Assembly: GCA_002189035.1 (NCBI GenBank)
Contig: CM007991.1
Location: 2,542,001-2,606,000, forward strand
DNA: 64,000 nucleotides
Origin: Utricularia gibba
Lineage: Eukaryota > Plantae > Magnoliophyta
Reading direction: 5' to 3'
Shown here: piece by piece, positions 4,911 through 62,508 of the stretch
Layout of the letters: each line of letters begins with the position of its first letter
Position numbering within the stretch: the stretch's first letter is position 1
Made by a program: the position numbers and the translations under genes
Notes under the pieces: model-generated
The model's database searches: none
Told to the model about the DNA's origin: nothing
The model's input: the letters and a program-made list of their open reading frames with translations, nothing else

Positions 4911-7650
4911 TCAAGGGACGCTTGATTCATCAGACAGAGGACGGAATCCATGTTTGAGACAAGCTTCCCATGTTTGAGTGACTTGGAGGATGTTGTCGCC
5001 GCATTCGTCGGCGTTCCATTCCTCGGCGGCGTGCAGTATCCCGGCAATGCGTGAGGCGCTCATCGCCCTCCTCGGCAGCCAATTCTGTCACCAGCCCCAC
5101 GAAGCGAAATTGTTTAATTATGCATGATGGCGATACAGCAGGAAGTGGTTGATGAGTTAACCAACCTCGCAAGAATCCAAGTTCTGTAGATGCTTGGGAG
5201 CTAGCATTGCTGGTGTGGTTCTGTAGGTGCAGTCCTTGCGGATTCTATCGGGAGGGATTTGAGACAATGGAATGAAAGTGGTTCCTTTTGGGGCCCTGAG
5301 TTGTTCGTCGTCTGTCAAGCCATCGCCCACCAACCAAATCTGCAGCAAGACAACACAACCAATAAAAAGAAGGTTGTTCAAGTTGGTTACACTGACTGAA
5401 CTTTACCTTTGGAAGTGGAACTTGGCTTTCATGGAGGAGCACGAGCTTGCCTTGGCTCTCCTTGTCATCACCCATCTTTTCTCTGATCTTCTCGTACTCA
5501 TCCTTGTGCAGAGTGAACACGCTGATTCCTCCTCTGCACAAGGCTAAAGCAACTGCATAAGCCAGCTTAGTGACATTTCCCCTAAGAAGCACTTGAGTTG
5601 TCTCCTTCGGAATGGTGTTAAGCACGACCGCAACAGCCAAGCTACTCCCATCCACCACTTTCACCTTCAACTTCGGGTGCTTCCTCACAAAAATCTCCCC
5701 ATTTTTGTTCAGCTCTTGCCCCTGGATCACAAGCATTCCGAAGACATACATGTACACAAATTCTCCAACCAAAAAAAGGTATTTCTCTGGGAAGCAAACA
5801 AGTATCTTGCCTGGTTGAGCAACCCCAAGCTCACAACCTTGGCACCCTTCTCCTCTGCGCTAAGTATGGCGTCTTCTATCGCACTGTTGATCGCCTCCGT
5901 CTGCCATTGCATTTGGTACTGCAACCAACGCGAACTCGGTAACTCTCTCGGTTACTAAAACCAACCGTCTTTCGGGAGTCCGAGCGTACCTGAATGGCGT
6001 ATTTGGGCAGGCACCATGTTTGCAACTTGAGCTTCTCGAACACATTCCTCTCCAACACAAAGCTACTCCCGTGCAACAGATTCTTCACAGTGGACCATAG
6101 CGTCAGTGGCCACACCAAGGTCAAGTACCACCTGGGCACGTAGGGTTGCGCGGCGAGGTGAGCAAACCCTATGCGGAGATGATAGATCGATCCCGGCGTC
6201 GTCAAGTGTGTGAGATGAACGACGTCGCATCGCTCGTCTTCCCTAAGGAGGGACTTCTCGTAGAGGGTGTCGGAGGACTTGTCCACGGTGCCATAGACGT
6301 AATCGTAGAGCGGCATGAAGAGACAGTAGTTCGTCCGGAACTGCGTATGGTGCAGCGAGTGGTACCTGTGTTGTCACATGCAAATGCAGCACAGTACGAT
6401 CAGTAGTCTTCGAAAACGCTCAAAAAACATCACTTCACCATTTCCCACAATGCTCTCACAGGCAATCCGTAGCGGTGTCTTAACGCAATGAAAGACAGGT
6501 TGTACGTCATCATATTACACAGTGACAGAGATCAGTTCAGTTCTTATTTGTTAATCAAATCATCAATGGCTAATATCGTGGGGTGCCTGGTTTCAGAATG
6601 ATGGTGAACATGTGTTCCCTTTCCGTTTTCCCGATTACTGGGTGTTGAGGTTACTTACGAGGGAGTATACATCAGATACTTGAGAGGAGGGAAGATGGAG
6701 AAGATGGACTTGGGAACGTGCTCGAAGTTGCAGTGCCCCATATTGTTCATGAAGTCGACGAACGTAATGTAGAGAGCTACAGACGCTATGGAATTCACTC
6801 CGCAGAGAGCAGTCCCCAGAATGGGGATCGCAAACAGAGCATAGTAAGCAATATGCTCCGCAAATGGGTGGATCACGGCTGCTCACACAACCCAACAGTG
6901 TTAAGATAAACCCCAGCAACGGATCTTGAATCGGAAAAGGAAAGAAATGAGGGAATTAGTACGTACAGGTGATGGGTTCTGTGACGACGGACGAGTGGTG
7001 GTGGGAGTGGTAGCGGGAGTAGAGAAAATGGTGGTGGAGAGCTCTGTGGAGCCAGTAGTAGAGAAACTCTACAGGCCCCGCATGGATAACAAACGTCCAT
7101 ATGACGCCGTCGGTTCTCCACCACGGCAGATTCCGGGTGCCGGCAACGTAGTGCTGCCCGATGTATAGCAGAAGGCCGTTCAGTATGATCTGGTCGTCCC
7201 TGCAGCGAAACCCCACAACAACAACACAATCAACAAAAAAAAAAAACAATCATCTTCACTGCATTCATACTGTGTAGCTTTAGCTTCACCAGTTAGCTTC
7301 GCGGTCGACTTGGTCGAACTCGATCGGCTTATCGACGATCCGGTTCGACCCTTTCGCGGTCCGGTACCGGGAGAGCGAAATCCAGACGAGGTTGTGAAGG
7401 GCTCGGGAGAGAATCAACGGGAGAATGAGGAAGTTAGATAGGTCCCTCTGGCCATCGGTGCCCCCAGTCACGAACCGGTACGTCGAATGAAACGCGAACG
7501 GTGCCAGCACAGCGTACTGCAAAAACAAACACGACGCCGCACTAGGTTTAAAATCCAAGCAAAAGAAGCAAGACGAAGAAGACGAAGAACCTTGTAGCTG
7601 CCGAGCCACGTCCAAGGCCATTCTGTAAGAATGCCGGGATTTGAAGCCAT
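4911..7650 (-). CDS. CER1: CER1-like very-long-chain alkane-forming enzyme, copy B (appears intact)
   Basis: MASNPGILTEWPW start; same His clusters (LHRALHHH, YHSHHH, YHSLHH); C-terminal NWLPRRAMSASRIAGILHAAEEW...KHGFRPL; stop at 4911-4913. Confidence 0.93.
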
Positions 7651-28467: not shown

Positions 28468-29025
28468 TCCTGCAAGAAATGAATCATCGGATCATTCACA
28501 GCATATTGGGGAGAATGACGAAAGGGGAAAAAACATCTTACCACCGATTCAGACAATTTCCTAGCATTCTGTTCTTAGACGCGGAATTTATAACCCCTTT
28601 TTCTCCCTCGAGCAAACTACCGACTGTTTTTTCCCCCGAATGTGTTCACTCTGTCAAAACTGCGAATCCAAACTCCGTTCTCCTCACGTTTTAGAGGGAA
28701 GTACAGGCCTTGATCGTCAAACCGGCAATCACCGTCAGCTACGCCTGAGTTGACCAAATCGTCAAGGGTCGAGTGAATATAATTATTTTAAATTATCGAC
28801 ATATAATTTTACATATCAAAAGGTATTATTTATTTATGAAGCGTTTGACTCAAAAAGTCACGTGTTGGCAAAAAAACAGAAGACAGGTAGCCCAGAGGAA
28901 GAAGACGACGATTGGCCGTAACTAAACAACACTGTAGACAGACAGTACACGACGCCTCTCCCATGCCTCAAATGTGCGCTCCGCGCATTTACCCCCACTC
29001 CCTCATCCACAAGCTCGTAGCTGCA

Positions 29026-30584
29026 ATGCCGCGCCCTCCTTCTGCTACTGCTCCCCGGATGCGGCCGTTCACGGGCCTCCGCCAAATCCCATTATTCTTC
29101 CTCATCCTCACTTTGGGCGTGTTTTTCGTCTCGTTGCTTCTGTCTCTCGCTTTTTACCTCTGGCTCATTCGCAGAAGAACTGAGCTCACGGATCTGAAAT
29201 CCCCTTTTCCTGTTCTTCCACAAAGATTCTCTTTTTCAGCTCTCAGGCGCGCAACCGATTCATTTTCTGCTTCTAAACTTCTTGGCCAAGGTGGGTTCGG
29301 GTCAGTTTACAGAGGGGTTCTGGAATCGGGCCAAGAAATCGCGGTGAAGGTGATGAACGAAGGTTCTGTTGAAGGGGAACGTGAGTTTCGCAACGAGCTC
29401 TCGGTTGCGTCTAGTATAGATACCGTGTTTTGCCCGCACATTGTTCGCTTGCTTGGATCTTCATCACACAACAGAAAACAGCGGAAGAAGAGAAAGATAG
29501 CGATTGTTTACGAGCATATGCATAATGGGAGTTTACAGGATGCCCTGTTTGAACGGAAATGTCCTGAATTGATGAATTGGGACAAGAGGTTTGCAATTAT
29601 AACATCTGTTGCAAAGGGTCTCTTTTATCTGCATAACTGCTGCATTCCGCCGGTTATCCATGGAGATATCAAGCCCTCGAACATATTACTGGATCGCGAC
29701 TTTGAAGCTAAAATTGCTGATTTTGGCTTAGCGCAGATACTCACCGGGTCAGAGGAGGATAAGACTGAGATCAATAGGTCGAGAGTGGAGAACAAAGAAA
29801 GTTGTTTTCTGCAGAAGGAGAGTAGTGTTTCTGAGGAAAAATGGAAGCAAGAAAATGTAAATGTAGATGAAATTGGTAAAGTAAAGGAAACGGATAAGTA
29901 CAAGGGTTTGAATGCGCAGAAACAGAGCAGCAGCAGCAAGAAGCCAAGAGAATGGTGGAAAGAAGAGTTCTGTGATGAGTTATCAAGAAAAAAGAACGAC
30001 GAGTCTCTCAAGGACAATAATGAAGAATGTAAGCGGAAGAGCTGGAGCCGAGGCCGGAGGAGCATCGACCGTTGGCTGGAAAGTAAAAGAAAAAGCAGCC
30101 AAGAGGAGGCTGATGGCAATGAGTGCACTACTAGCATTGCAACGGCCCGAGGAACGGTATGCTACATTGCTCCTGAATTCAGCTGCGGTGGTCCAGCAAC
30201 AGACAAGTGCGATGTTTACAACTTCGGAGTTCTCGTTCTGGTAGTGGTCTCAGGGAGAAGACCATTGCAAGTAACAGGAGGATTAGGCTCAGCGGCGATG
30301 TCCGAATTCGAGAAAGCAAATCTGATCTCATGGTCTAAGCAGCTTGCAAGCAATGGGAGACTGTTGAATCTGACGGATCCGCAGATTGAGTTGTTGAAAC
30401 GAGACGAGGCAGTCTTATGCCTCACAATAGCACTTCTTTGCTTGCAAAGGTCGCCGGAGAAACGGCCCACAATGAAGGAGATCGTGGGGATGCTTGGTGG
30501 GAAGTCGGAGCCCCCCAGCTTCCTCTAGAGTTCTCGCCATCGCCGCCGCCGGGATTCCCCTTCACGCACCGGCACCATCCATGA
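29026..30584 (+). CDS. Intronless receptor-like Ser/Thr kinase, At2g45590/At4g25390 family; apparent 1-nt frameshift at 30511-30516
   Basis: N-terminal TM; GQGGFGSVY; AVK; HGDIKPSN; DFG; RGTVCYIAPE; SGRRPLQV. The family tail EFSPSPPPGFPF lies in the next frame and ends at 30584. Confidence 0.9.
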
Positions 30585-45343: not shown

Positions 45344-47695
<2,352 letters not shown>

Positions 47696-48213
47696 ACTTG
47701 CCAAGAGCAGCCTTCTGTAAATGCACATGGTTCCTCGAGTGAGACCATTTTCATTTAGAGATAACCACAAACTCCTTTGTCTTTTCATTTTTACCTGGTG
47801 GATGATGTGAGAGAAGAGATGGAATTATGAAGATCAAGGCTGTCAATAGGTTGAAAAATGTGATTCCTCTGCTGTTAGATTAGGAAACTGATTTTGTATG
47901 TTAAGCCGCTGAAGCTTTTCCCTGTGCCTGTACTGTATTATTATGAATCTTGTATAAGTATTTTGTTCATTCTGCTTTCAGTGGTGATCCCTAATTGAAC
48001 TAACTTCACATATCAGCCAGTAAAAGTGTTTGTACTTTTAGTGAAACCCAAGGCACAGCTTAAAATGTGGAAATCCAAATGTTACACTTGGTCAGATTTC
48101 AAGGTTTCACCGAAAAACTTTCATATTAACTAATAAATTGATGATACCAAACGGAGGTAAAGGTGACTGCAACAGATACACTCTCTGTATACTCCTTGTT
48201 CCCTAAAAATTCT

Positions 48214-49162
48214 TCAAGAGTTTTGCTCATCTTGAGAGTCCTCTTGTTCTGGTTTAGGCTCCTGAGGGTCTTGCTCAATGGCCTCAGTCGAAGCACTTTT
48301 CCTATGATTTGCACCCTCGAGAACATGCTGGTAGTTCCCCTTCTCCATGAACAGCTGCTGAAAATGAACTTTGCAGTACAAAATCCCATCAAGTGCAGCA
48401 TAGGATGAGTGCGTCAGAGGACATCCACCATGAGCACACTTGAAGCATGACTTGTGGTATGATTCCCCTTCCAGTATCACCTGGTTGTTTTGTTCCATCA
48501 AATAACATGAAGCGTAACCAGGTACACGTAAAGCTCATATTCTTTTAACAGATAACCTTCTCCAATGGGTAAACAGTTTTGTGGCATGCAGCGCATTTAT
48601 CTTGAGTTCCAGAGAACATGGCTGAGACCTTGCTTGGAGGGGCCTTGTTCTACACGTACAAAAACATCAACCAAAAAATCATTTTTCAGCCCATAATCAT
48701 TCTTGGCTTACCAGGGGATTTTCCTTTTCGTTCCTGTCTGCATGAACGTGAACATGAAGACGATGAGTGGGCATGGCAACAAGTCAAATAAATATTTGAC
48801 ATATATAGGGAAAAAACATCATACGTGTCTGGAAGTTCTTGCTGAAATTCCCTGATTCCTTGAACAGCTGCTCAAAATGAGGCTTGCAGTACAGAACTCC
48901 ATCCATGGATGAGTAGTTGCTCATCTACCACGCACACATCGAAACCAAAAAAATTAATCCTTTTCGACGACAGAGCAGGGGCGTATAGATTGTATTACAT
49001 GTTGAAGCAGGAAGATGAATTTACCACAAGGGTGCCTTTGCAATGGCTGCATTTGAAGCAGGATTTGTGGTAAGTCGCCCCATCAGCAGAAAGGAGATCA
49101 ACGAAGTAAACAGTCTTATCACACGCCTTGCATTTGTCCAGAGTTCCTGTGAAAGCAGACAT
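48214..49162 (-). CDS. PLIM2: Two-LIM-domain actin-binding protein, PLIM2-like
   Basis: MSAFTGTLDKCKACDKTVY...YHKSCFKCSHCKG; second LIM HKSCFKCAHGGC...YCKVHFQQLF; acidic tail. Confidence 0.92.
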
Positions 49163-49195
49163 GTTCTCTTAACCTTTTTTCTTTTTTTTTTTCCA

Positions 49196-49963
49196 ATGCG
49201 GGAGAGAAAACTGTTCCTTCAAGTCTGGCCCCAAGGATTAAGAACAATTTGTGGTGCTTCAGACAAAAACATGGGCCATCTCAACGTTAACCGCACAAGT
49301 GGCTGGAGAGGAGGCCGAAAGCTCTTACCAAAGATTGCTACAATATTTTTGTGTGGAGTCCGCAGAAGTAGGAGAGCAATGAGGCCAGGGGTGCGTGCTT
49401 TTTGGAATCCACCTCACCATCAAAATTTCCGTAATTAGAAGATAAAGATCCGAGAAGGATAGTATGATAAATTTGCTGTGAATTGCGCTGTCCCCAGGCA
49501 CACTGGTTCTTCTTCAATCTCCCTGCAATTATCTCCCCCCTGATATCAAACGGGGACTGATCACCCTGGACGAAGAAAAGCTCGTAATACAACTACTCCC
49601 AGGACGCGCAAATAAGGAGATACAGAATTTATCCCCTGCCAACCCATCAAAGCGGCACATGGCTCAATGGGAGACCCCGCTCGCTTGTTTGGAAGCCGAG
49701 GTGTGTTTGTCTACGGAATCTGCGGTTCTGTCAACTTCGGGGAAACCTGAAGGTGATTACTTTCTGCGTTTGTGGAACTCTGAAGTTGGGGAGACTCTAA
49801 AAGAAACGCGGGTGATCGGAAGAAGAAGAAAAAGAATTGTGGGTCTTGTTGAATTTCAACAGGGGTTGCTGAGAAGGATGAAAATGTAGACGTCGAAGAA
49901 TAATGGATCATCGGAGATGAGCTTGGAATTACTTGTCCATTTGAAGATGGCATGAGTTTCTTA
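49196..49963 (+). pseudogene. MYB17: Deletion-riddled relic of an R2R3-MYB subgroup 9 gene (MYB17/LMI2-like); clear core 49527-49889
   Basis: One stop-free frame from 49527 reads NYLPPDIKRGLITLDEEKLVIQL-LPGRANKEIQNL-SPANPSKRHMAQWETPLACLEAEVCLSTES...GDYFLRLWNSEVGE. Shifted-frame SSEMSLELL and EDGMSFL follow. Weak exon-1-like patches (KSGPK, WR..LPKIA) at 49196-49340. Confidence 0.8.
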
Positions 49964-50173
49964 GCCTCTTCTAGAGTTCCAATGCTGGTTTCTTCACTGG
50001 AGAAGAAAGCTCGGTGAAGGGTTTGAGAAAGAAAACCACCCAAAATAAAATAAATGGGCTTTATCGTATTTGGGCTCAAGAATGACGGAACTCTGCGCTT
50101 AGAGGCCCAGCCCATAGCTATTTTGTTCCCGGCACTCTGCCCGCGAATGAGCAAGTTATTGTCTTGTCCGTCC

Positions 50174-52454
50174 ATGGAGTCCGCGTGCGACGTTCTTCCG
50201 TCGTGGGGAGAGAAGGTTTCCTCAGCAGTTTTTTCAGTTTACCGGTCTCTTTCCAAGAAGGGGAAACCTCAAGGTCGTGAAGTCACTGTTCTAGCCGCTT
50301 TTCTGCTGTCCGATGCGTCCCAAGGTCGTGACCATTTTAGGCTGCTTTCTTGAATGCGTGTTTTCGTGATGAATTTTTCCTTTTCCGACTTCAGTGAACT
50401 TTTTTTTATAAATGGGAAATGTGTGCTAGAGTTAAGAGTGGTGGCGCTGGCGACGGGTACTAAGTGCATCGGCCGCTGGAAACGGAGCCCGATTGGGGAT
50501 GTTGTAAATGATTCGCATGCCGAAGTGATATCCAGAAGATCACTTATAAGGTTTCCTCTACGGTTTTGCAATTGATTCATTCATATGGTCTCTTGTGAAT
50601 GAATGGAATGAAATATGCTGATACGTTTTGTTTGGATTTACATGTTTTTCTACGACGAGATACGCCGCGCCGGAAAAAAGCATGAGCACAATCATGATGA
50701 AAAGCTTGTTTTGGAAAATGTTCAAATGAGGGATTCAATTTTCTGTAGGAGCTCAGATACAACTACGAAGGGAAAATTTAAGCTAAAACCTGGCTTGCGG
50801 TTGCATTTGTATATATCACAATTACCCTGTAGGTTTTTTGCATTGCACTGAAGTGGGCTTTTATTTTATCACTGGTTAAATTTTGGCTGTTCATCTTTAA
50901 TTGGTTCATTTGTTGTTGAATAGGCGGGGATGCATCATCCCGGTCGAAGATGTTCACCTGTGCGAGCAATACAGAAAATCCCACATCTGAATGTGCCGCT
51001 TCGGAATGCTGTGAACAGCAGGATGGTAATCTTTAGTTGTTTTGATCCAATGGCCACTGTTGGTTTTGTGGTTAATGAATGTTCTGCCAGGATTTTACGT
51101 TCAGCGTGCTAGGACAGTTCAGAGGAAGCCTGGACGAGGTGATACAACTTGGTCCGTTAGCTGCTCTGACAAAATAGCTCGGTGGAATGTTCTTGGAGTA
51201 CAAGGTTTGTTGTAGGTTTTCTGTTATGAGAACTTCACACTTAAGTTATTGACAATGATTCCTTGTGCATTTCAGTTGTTCTTTGTATCCGAATAAAAAT
51301 TTCTGTTCATGAATTACATATGAAGTTTTTTCAGTGGCTGTACTTAGACAGTGTTGCCTTTCATAGCATACTATTCAATGGATATTGTTTTTGTTACAGG
51401 AGCTTTGCTTTCCTGCTTTCTTGAGCCTGTTTATATTTCCTCCATTACTGTGGGCTTATCCCAGTTTGAATATGTAAATGATCTTGCCATCAAGAACCTT
51501 GAAAGATCCTTACACGAGCGAATTGCATTAATATCTGATGAAGTCATCAAGCCCTTCCATGTGAAGAAGGTAATAATGTTCGTCATCTGTTCATCATTCT
51601 ATACGGCAATAGTTCTATAGGCTGATCTCAGAATGTTGAAATTTTTAGCCACTCCTGCTGGTAGCTCCAGTACCGTCAAAGGAATTTCAACATTGCGAGA
51701 CAACTCTAGAAACCCTAACATGCGGGTACTTGTTGAGATTCATATTTGACATCTTGCCACAAATTCTCTTGGACAGTTTTTTAACTTGATGATGTTTTAT
51801 AAACTTATTACAGATATTCAATAGCATGGAATGCATGTGGTTTGCATGAAGTCGTTCTTGGAACCACAGGTAGAAAGCAGGGAACGTCTGCAAAAGGAGC
51901 TGCACGCCCAAGTACGGAGTCATCCTTGTGCAAGTAAGTTTAAAATTCTGAGATGCTGAATGTCTGTACCTAGCCTGCCTTCTATATACTCTGCCTCTCT
52001 TTCTGTCTCTCTCTGATATTCCTGTTTTCTATGCCTCTCTCAGTATGCCATGTGTGAACAGATTCTATGTGTATGCTGATTTCCTGCAGGAAGCGATTAT
52101 TGGAGCTACTGATATTGCTCAAGCAAGATCTTTCATTGGAAACCTGTACCAGGATGACATACAGAGATATCAAGGTATCCAGGGTTCTGTTACGTGCATA
52201 ACTATGAATTCCGTCTTATTGGGTCACAATTTCTCCGATGCAGTTAAAGCAACTTTTTTTTTTAATTCTTTTGAAACAAGTTAAGCAGTATTTTGATGGT
52301 GTATATGAGAACCTCGTGGAATAAGTGCTGTCTGTCGCAGGAACAAGCTGAAGGGTATAGTGCAGCTTCAAAGGTCTTTAAAGAAAGTCCGCACTTCTGT
52401 AACTGGATTGGAAAACCTCAAAATATGGAGTCCTTTTGCTATGAAGGATGTTAG
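50174..52454 (+). CDS. TAD1: tRNA-specific adenosine deaminase 1 (ADAT1/TAD1)
   Basis: [19 protein letters not shown]; ALATGTKC; [13 protein letters not shown]; PCGDAS; [16 protein letters not shown]; NWIGKP. Confidence 0.9.
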
Positions 52455-61989: not shown

Positions 61990-62508
61990 CACTCAACAGC
62001 CGAATGTGTGGCGAGGGTATGCTTTACACCCTACACCCAGTCATTTGACACAGGTTCGAGAGTTAGCTCTTGTGCAACCTAAGAACAGTGCATTTTATAG
62101 CTCTCGTCTAGCGGTCCATTATCTGATGATGTGTTTTCTTGAGTGGTGTCATAGCCATGGAATTGGATTATACAGAACATTGTTTAGTCTCACATCAACA
62201 TTCATCTGATATATTTGCATGATGTGTTTATGTGATGGAAAATGAAAAAAAAAAAAAAAAAAAAACCTCAGCTTCCTCTCAGTATGCTACATATGCAAAC
62301 AAAAATGAAAAGGGTACCCACCGAATCTTATATGTACAAGAAAAAGGATTTGACTATATAGCAACTACAACACTTGTTTTTGATCCACTAGGTTCCAACT
62401 CTCACCCACTGGGGAACAGAAGAAGCTTGTGAACTTCATCAGCATGATGCAGCGGCAGCCTCTTTATTCGAATCTACAAAGAATGGCAGATAGTGATTGA
62501 CATCGAGA

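Follow-up and report, generated by a model that had tools for sequence, protein, structure and literature searches.

A probable MYB17-clade pseudogene, eroded by deletions at its ancestral site and flanked by a PLIM2-type LIM gene and a TAD1-like gene

The window analyzed here (the whole stretch of 64,000 nt) harbors at 49526-49967, on the plus strand, a 442-bp relic of a MYB gene. We consider this relic, with a probability of roughly 90%, to be a non-processed pseudogene of the MYB17 clade (R2R3-MYB subgroup 9B), eroded by deletions in its ancestral slot between a divergent PLIM2-type LIM gene and a TAD1-like gene. The window is plant DNA with a G+C content of 43.7%. The features of the locus are as follows:

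48214..49162, minus strand: LIM gene, intact and encoding two LIM domains, which runs from the ATG at 49162-49160 to the stop at 48214-48216 (two exon ORFs match Pfam LIM)
49163..49525, no strand: spacer of unique DNA with no detectable MYB homology; site where exon 1, intron 1 and the beginning of exon 2 (40 nt) would be expected
49526..49595, plus strand: relic block A, middle of exon 2 (end of R2 to first R3 helix), NYLPPDIKRGLITLDEEKLVIQL (nhmmer exon-2 profile, tblastn)
49596..49632, plus strand: relic block B, derived from exon 3, LPGRANKEIQNL, and directly continuous with block A (alignments, spacing, nhmmer exon-3 positions 22-58)
49633..49641, plus strand: junction of the second deletion; about 93 nt missing (27-32 codons, WNTHLKKRL...MGIDPQTHEP...; exon-3 profile positions 59-160 absent)
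49642..49805, plus strand: relic block C, subgroup-9 motif HMAQWET..ACLEAEVCLSTES and MYB17-type motif DYFLRLWNSEVGETLK (alignments, tblastn, nhmmer)
49806..49967, plus strand: relic block D, decayed variable C-terminal region (three-frame translations, alignment, nhmmer exon-3 match reaching 49967)
50174..51617, plus strand: TAD1/ADAT1-like gene for a tRNA adenosine deaminase, 5' part (three exon ORFs match Pfam A_deamin with E 1e-10 to 1e-13)

The spacer between the start codons of the two flanking genes (49163-50173) is 1011 bp long. The original prediction had a MYB ghost filling this PLIM2-TAD1 spacer; the relic that we detected covers 442 of the 1011 bp, or 44%. Its 5' edge is 364 bp away from the LIM ATG, and its 3' edge is approximately 206 bp before the probable TAD1 start codon (the ATG at 50174, assigned by reading the sequence). 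Thus, it comes nearer to the TAD1-like start than to the LIM start. The locus is compact, with three genes' worth of DNA in about 3.5 kb and a spacer of 1 kb. The LIM, TAD1, and MYB genes were compared exon by exon and not as joined spliced models. In this comparison, the LIM gene, which is PLIM2-type by synteny, shared 80-90% nucleotide identity with that of Genlisea aurea. Its exons 1-2 had 100% amino-acid identity to Genlisea, and the summed dN was 0.023 at a dS of ~1.6. Just past the 3' end of the LIM gene, exon-like ORFs resembling a GSK3/shaggy-type kinase were seen on the plus strand (46950-47750), and Pfam gave no match at E 0.01 for one 42-residue piece of them. Elsewhere in the window, a 538-codon single-exon ORF at 28912-30528 (+) reads like a receptor-like protein kinase.

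The relic was recognized by its motifs and by similarity searches. A frame of 135 codons is open on the plus strand from 49482 to 49886 and encodes NYLPPDIKRG, EEKLVIQL, LPGRANKEIQNL, HMAQWET..ACLEAEVCLSTES, and DYFLRLWNSEVGE. The translation matched the original prediction, which had read NYL.PDIKRG, EEKLVIQL, LPGR..EI.NL, HMAQWE..EAE..LS.ES, and DYFLRLWNSEVGE in the frame from 49527 and had called the region a ghost of a MYB17/MIXTA-subgroup gene that the ORF list does not show as a MYB. Indeed, a word search of 5.8 billion proteins returned six matches, among which a Genlisea aurea MYB ranked first (E 3.2e-16), ahead of a Rehmannia R2R3-MYB and a Striga "myb domain protein 17." When the Genlisea protein was compared by tblastn to the whole window, a single HSP was obtained (49527-49805, E 2.3e-23). 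Furthermore, the 120 best relatives of the Rehmannia orthologue in a second word search came from across the eudicots and were mostly named MYB17 by their sources.

DNA profiles of the orthologous exons were built from Genlisea, Rehmannia, Striga, and two Logan contigs (L003 and L006). With nhmmer, the exon-2 profile matched only at 49526-49596 (positions 41-111 of 131, E 8.2e-10). Two segments matched the exon-3 profile, one at 49596-49632 covering positions 22-58 and the other at 49642-49967 covering positions 161-492 of 532, the latter with an E of 1.2e-26. The relic therefore consists of three collinear pieces, joined at 49595/49596 and at ~49632-49641. Its 3' end had been expected near 49963, in line with a C-terminal motif detected at 49905-49967. 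No Myb domain was found by Pfam at E<=10 in any open piece of the relic, and a PDB sequence search yielded a marginal WER match alone (E 0.004).

The subgroup-9 motif is located ~30 residues downstream of R3, and the clades of the subgroup were named by Brockington et al. 2013 (described in PMC10965086). In the relic, HMAQWET(PL)ACLEAEVCLSTES aligned with HMAQWE.ARLEAEARLS.ES of all matches, with two Arg-to-Cys changes and a 2-residue insertion. The MYB17-clade motif FLRLWNSEVGE was invariant across the alignment of the relic and its homologues. In a FastTree phylogeny of the retained columns, the relic was sister to the Genlisea MYB17-like protein (support 0.69); this tree had no subgroup 9A (MIXTA) outgroup, and the assignment to 9B versus 9A is by motif and source names. 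We conclude that, on the evidence of its sequence, the relic is homologous to MYB17-clade (subgroup 9B) R2R3-MYB genes, and that chance similarity is ruled out. Weak MYB17-like signals were also seen at 62129-62447 (+), with an E of 0.009 for the exon-1 DNA profile and of 0.2 for the C-terminal peptide. A second MYB17 fragment at 62.1-62.4 kb was rejected as chance, since seven full-length MYB17 proteins gave nothing consistent there.

According to the literature, AtMYB17, also called LATE MERISTEM IDENTITY2 (LMI2), is At3g61250 and belongs to R2R3-MYB subgroup 9B. The relic shares with the MYB17/LMI2 clade the R2/R3 linker, the subgroup-9 motif downstream of R3, FLRLWNSEVGE, the C-terminal DSSES..LL..DMSFL, the expected position of intron 2, and a PLIM2-type LIM neighbor. 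It differs in that R2 is missing, R3 is fragmentary and has lost both remaining Trp and the recognition helix, exon 1 and a start codon are absent, and frameshifts and a stop are present. It is thus a descendant of the clade rather than a working member.

The two internal losses were evident from the spacing of conserved motifs. PDIKRG and LPGR are 33 residues apart in 33 of 33 homologues but only 19 in the relic. At 49595/49596, exactly 14 residues (HAILGNRWAAIASQ) are missing together with intron 2, which is 74 nt long in Genlisea. Similarly, the spacing between LPGR and HMAQWE is 47-52 residues in the homologues and 20 in the relic; this corresponds to a loss of 27-32 residues, or ~93 nt, at ~49632, beginning with WNTHLKK. 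The distance between HMAQWE and LWNSEVG is normal (38 residues, versus 36-43). These data bear out the two blocks that had been proposed as lost, namely about 14 residues plus intron 2 at 49596 and about 30 residues including WNTHLKK at 49632. Both the spacing and the profile gaps (the first 40 and last 20 nt of exon 2, and positions 1-21 and 59-160 of the exon-3 profile) agree with the view that tens of bases were lost, and not single bases by homopolymer errors. Since both internal losses are multiples of three, a long open frame survived.

Smaller lesions are found in the remainder of the relic. The subgroup-9 motif is interrupted by a 6-nt insertion at 49677-49682. In the variable region, the acidic run is read in another frame, and past 49805 the open frame is not the ancestral one; the latter stops at 49887-49889. 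In the C-terminal motif (SSE.ALELL / DMSFL), a 7-nt deletion after 49942 distributes the sequence between two frames, SSEMSLELL in frame 1 and EDGMSFL in frame 3. The sizeable changes are all deletions (at least 238 bp, at least ~116 bp, ~93 bp, and 7 bp), while the sole insertion is the one of 6 nt. Together, the four deletions removed at least 450 bp, and this was accompanied by roughly 6% point divergence.

Both junctions were inspected for repeats. At deletion 1, two similar heptamers, CAAYTRC and CARCTNC, flank the lost segment in the orthologues, and each encodes QL. A QL/QL microhomology had been suggested for this junction; a similar QL repeat is indeed present on both sides, but the junction retains both Leu codons and is one codon out of register, so that no more than 1 nt of microhomology can be assigned with certainty. 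At deletion 2, QNLSPANPSKRHM of the relic corresponds to LNRLPSSPSTRHM in many Lamiales orthologues. An Asn codon is present on both sides, and therefore the breakpoint is ambiguous by a codon or two. Short imperfect direct repeats at the junctions are suggestive, as judged from the orthologues and not from the true ancestral sequence.

The 5' part of the gene was not detected. An exon-1 DNA profile made from four orthologous exon 1 sequences found nothing in 49163-49480 at E<=100. With the exon-1 peptide profile, pieces of 49163-49480 ranked ~75th-135th among 2999 six-frame pieces of the window. By tblastn, 49262-49357 was matched with an E of 0.7-1.5, and this score came partly from reading through the expected position of intron 1. 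Thus, all three approaches performed no better than chance, and the weak exon-1 match that had been placed at 49196 was rejected. The 5' part of exon 2 at 49485-49525 was discarded too, because its gapless MAFFT alignment had only ~32% identity (counted by eye) and the nhmmer match starts at position 41. Comparison of 49163-49530 with the Genlisea LIM-MYB intergenic region revealed poly-T matches alone, a null result that says little given the saturation of silent sites. Within the window, the 363-bp segment that separates the relic from the LIM ATG occurs only once.

The retained blocks are ~71% identical to the orthologues at the nucleotide level and ~84% at the amino-acid level. So abrupt and full a loss of similarity as that at 49526 is not explicable by point decay, and we infer that the 5' part was deleted or replaced. 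The missing portion would comprise the promoter, exon 1, intron 1, and 40 nt of exon 2, that is, at least ~238 bp of the gene. The original prediction further held that, should the exon-1 match be real, only 33 bp would separate the relic from the LIM start, and that it would then have to serve as promoter or 5' UTR of the LIM gene. Detectable homology begins only at 49526, and such a role does not follow from a distance of 364 bp. The original description is accurate for the 3' two-thirds, but its exon-1 and promoter parts fail. The LIM 5' UTR and promoter are presumably contained in 49163..49525.

Several observations indicate that the relic has lost protein-level constraint. R2 is undetectable. 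R3 is devoid of HAILGNRWAAIASQ and WNTHLKK, and with them of two regularly spaced Trp positions and most of the recognition helix. What is left cannot form a MYB DNA-binding domain. From NYL onward, we counted 11 changes at columns that are >=95% conserved in 117 orthologues. They include R>P in NYLRPD, PF>LI in GPFT, TDN>ANK, K>Q, two R>C in the subgroup-9 motif, and FR>LK after GET. We also counted lineage-unique amino-acid changes in 74 unambiguously aligned codons, a unique change of the relic being one at which it differs while four orthologues agree. There were 12 such changes in the relic, 2 each in Genlisea and in Logan contig L006, and none in the others (12 versus 2, one-sided binomial p ~0.007). 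In the FastTree phylogeny, the terminal branch of the relic was 0.60 and thus 15 times longer than the family median of 0.039. Silent sites were saturated between all pairs, leaving dN/dS undefined. In summary, the relic carries disabling lesions at the ancestral locus and shows relaxed selective constraint.

The position of the relic is ancestral by comparison with Genlisea and Arabidopsis, in agreement with the MYB17/PLIM2 synteny originally proposed. On Genlisea aurea contig KE527931.1, a LIM gene (-) at 1051-2663 and a MYB17-like gene (+) starting at 5417 are arranged divergently, 2.7 kb apart. The Genlisea LIM/MYB pair may be the ortholog or an old paralog of the pair in the window (dS ~1.6). 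The introns of the Genlisea MYB17-like gene lie after LPKLAG and after GNR. At 6150-6975, this gene enters a long acidic GAA/GAC repeat, and the sequence is AT-rich after ~6286 up to the contig end. The C-terminal DSSES..LL..DMSFL motif of the Genlisea gene was not found on this contig, and the gene may have an extra intron or an insertion, or may itself be truncated.

AGI numbers follow chromosome order. In the literature, AtPLIM2c is At3g61230, AtPLIM2b is At1g01780, and AtTAD1 is At1g01760. By this order, Arabidopsis PLIM2c is two loci away from MYB17 (At3g61250), and PLIM2b is two loci away from TAD1. Thus, a PLIM2-type LIM gene accompanies the MYB17 clade both in Genlisea and in Arabidopsis. 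The window puts PLIM2, the MYB17 relic, and TAD1 side by side. Together with the AGI adjacency, this suggests an old PLIM2-MYB17-TAD1 block, in which two Arabidopsis microsyntenies are merged and from which genes were lost reciprocally. The Arabidopsis chromosome-1 region without MYB17 between TAD1 and PLIM2b looks like a parallel loss. For the MYB17 genes of Rehmannia and Striga, neither LIM nor TAD1 was found within 10 kb. In Logan contigs (L003:2441-2602, L004, and L005), a Remorin_C gene comes next after the intact MYB17 orthologue, in the opposite orientation. Arabidopsis has the same arrangement (At3g61260). No remorin trace was found in the window.

Could the relic still encode a short product? 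The 76-codon ATG ORF at 49659-49886, for example, might yield a dominant-negative "microProtein" without a DNA-binding domain. Both deletions are multiples of three, the frame is open over 135 codons, and the two subgroup motifs are the best-preserved parts. However, two invariant arginines of the subgroup-9 motif are now Cys and the 2-residue insertion splits it, a frameshift breaks the C-terminal motif, a stop interrupts the ancestral frame, and past 49805 the open frame is not the ancestral one. In addition, the promoter and the 5' exon are gone. In an exact look-up in the contig collection, three ORFs of the locus, including this one, were not on record. We consider a microProtein very unlikely. 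Given the in-frame deletions and the 135-codon frame, past or present synthesis of a truncated product nevertheless keeps a small probability.

The same look-up could be taken to mean that the gene is intact in the organism and that the missing blocks were collapsed or mis-joined during assembly, since the exact ORFs of the stretch were not found in independent assemblies. Yet a collapse does not account for the 11-12 substitutions at invariant sites or for the 6-nt insertion, the 7-nt frameshift, and the stop, and the deleted blocks are not repeats; an assembly artefact is hardly credible. The missing intron 2 and the partial exons also resemble a captured or processed fragment, moved in by a transposon (Pack-MULE or Helitron) or by retroposition instead of having decayed in place. 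But the loss of intron 2 is imprecise and includes 42 nt of flanking exon, so that it cannot be a splice product. Moreover, the neighbor and the divergent orientation are those of Genlisea, PLIM2 adjacency is also seen in Arabidopsis, neither terminal inverted repeats nor other copies were found, and no poly(A) tail is visible after 49967. Arrival of the fragment from elsewhere is, by these data, highly improbable.

Most probably, then, a MYB17-clade gene decayed in place, mainly by deletion. Its 5' end was truncated, with loss of the promoter, exon 1, intron 1, and the beginning of exon 2 (40 nt). Internally, at least ~116 bp with 14 codons and intron 2 were deleted, and a second deletion took ~93 bp. 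The 7-nt deletion broke the C-terminal motif. The remaining sequence has been evolving without constraint at the protein level. Most likely, the lost gene was a redundant duplicate and not the sole copy, and it was removed by fractionation in a compact Lamiales genome that is biased toward deletion and close to Genlisea.

The time of gene death was estimated roughly from the replacements. The relic has an excess of ~10 replacements over ~170 non-synonymous sites (~0.06 per site), whereas the silent divergence of the LIM gene from Genlisea is ~1.6, or ~0.8 per lineage. Therefore, free drift would have lasted about one-tenth or less of the time since the split from the Genlisea copy. In line with this, the retained blocks are still ~84% identical while the LIM silent sites are near saturation. 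As a rough estimate, the gene may have died fairly recently, in about the last tenth of the history of the lineage.

Fractionation by short deletions after polyploidy was described by Woodhouse et al. 2010 (PLoS Biol; PMC2893956). The relic has in common with it several exonic deletions of <200 bp in one gene, intact neighbors, and a syntenic site. It also shares short imperfect repeats at the junctions (CAAYTA / CAGCTC at deletion 1 and an Asn codon on both sides of deletion 2). It differs in that the junction of deletion 1 is one codon off the repeat register and in that the repeats were read from orthologues and not from a homeologue. Genome contraction in the Lentibulariaceae is known from the Genlisea aurea genome (Leushkin et al. 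2013; PMC3728226). Both the relic and the LIM gene are closest to Genlisea aurea, and with at least 450 bp deleted versus 6 bp inserted the relic fits such contraction. In Genlisea, by contrast, the LIM-MYB spacer is AT-rich and 2.7 kb long, and the MYB R2R3 domain is intact.

The 1-kb spacer has to accommodate the promoters of both neighbors. The relic lies within the usual reach of both promoters, nearer to that of TAD1, and is probably a passive part of the upstream regulatory DNA of both neighbors. We regard it as unlikely that the surviving MYB17 coding blocks were co-opted, as cis-regulatory DNA of the LIM/TAD1-like spacer or as a short motif-only protein. If true, co-option would explain why 442 bp persist in a genome that deletes dispensable DNA. 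As a deletion-eroded pseudogene, the relic would represent a clean snapshot of the dismantling of a gene in a compact genome, with both flanking genes intact. The MYB17 clade is linked to the identity of floral meristems and to the development of epidermis and cuticle. The loss of this subgroup-9B regulator would be notable if the plant lacks any other MYB17 copy.
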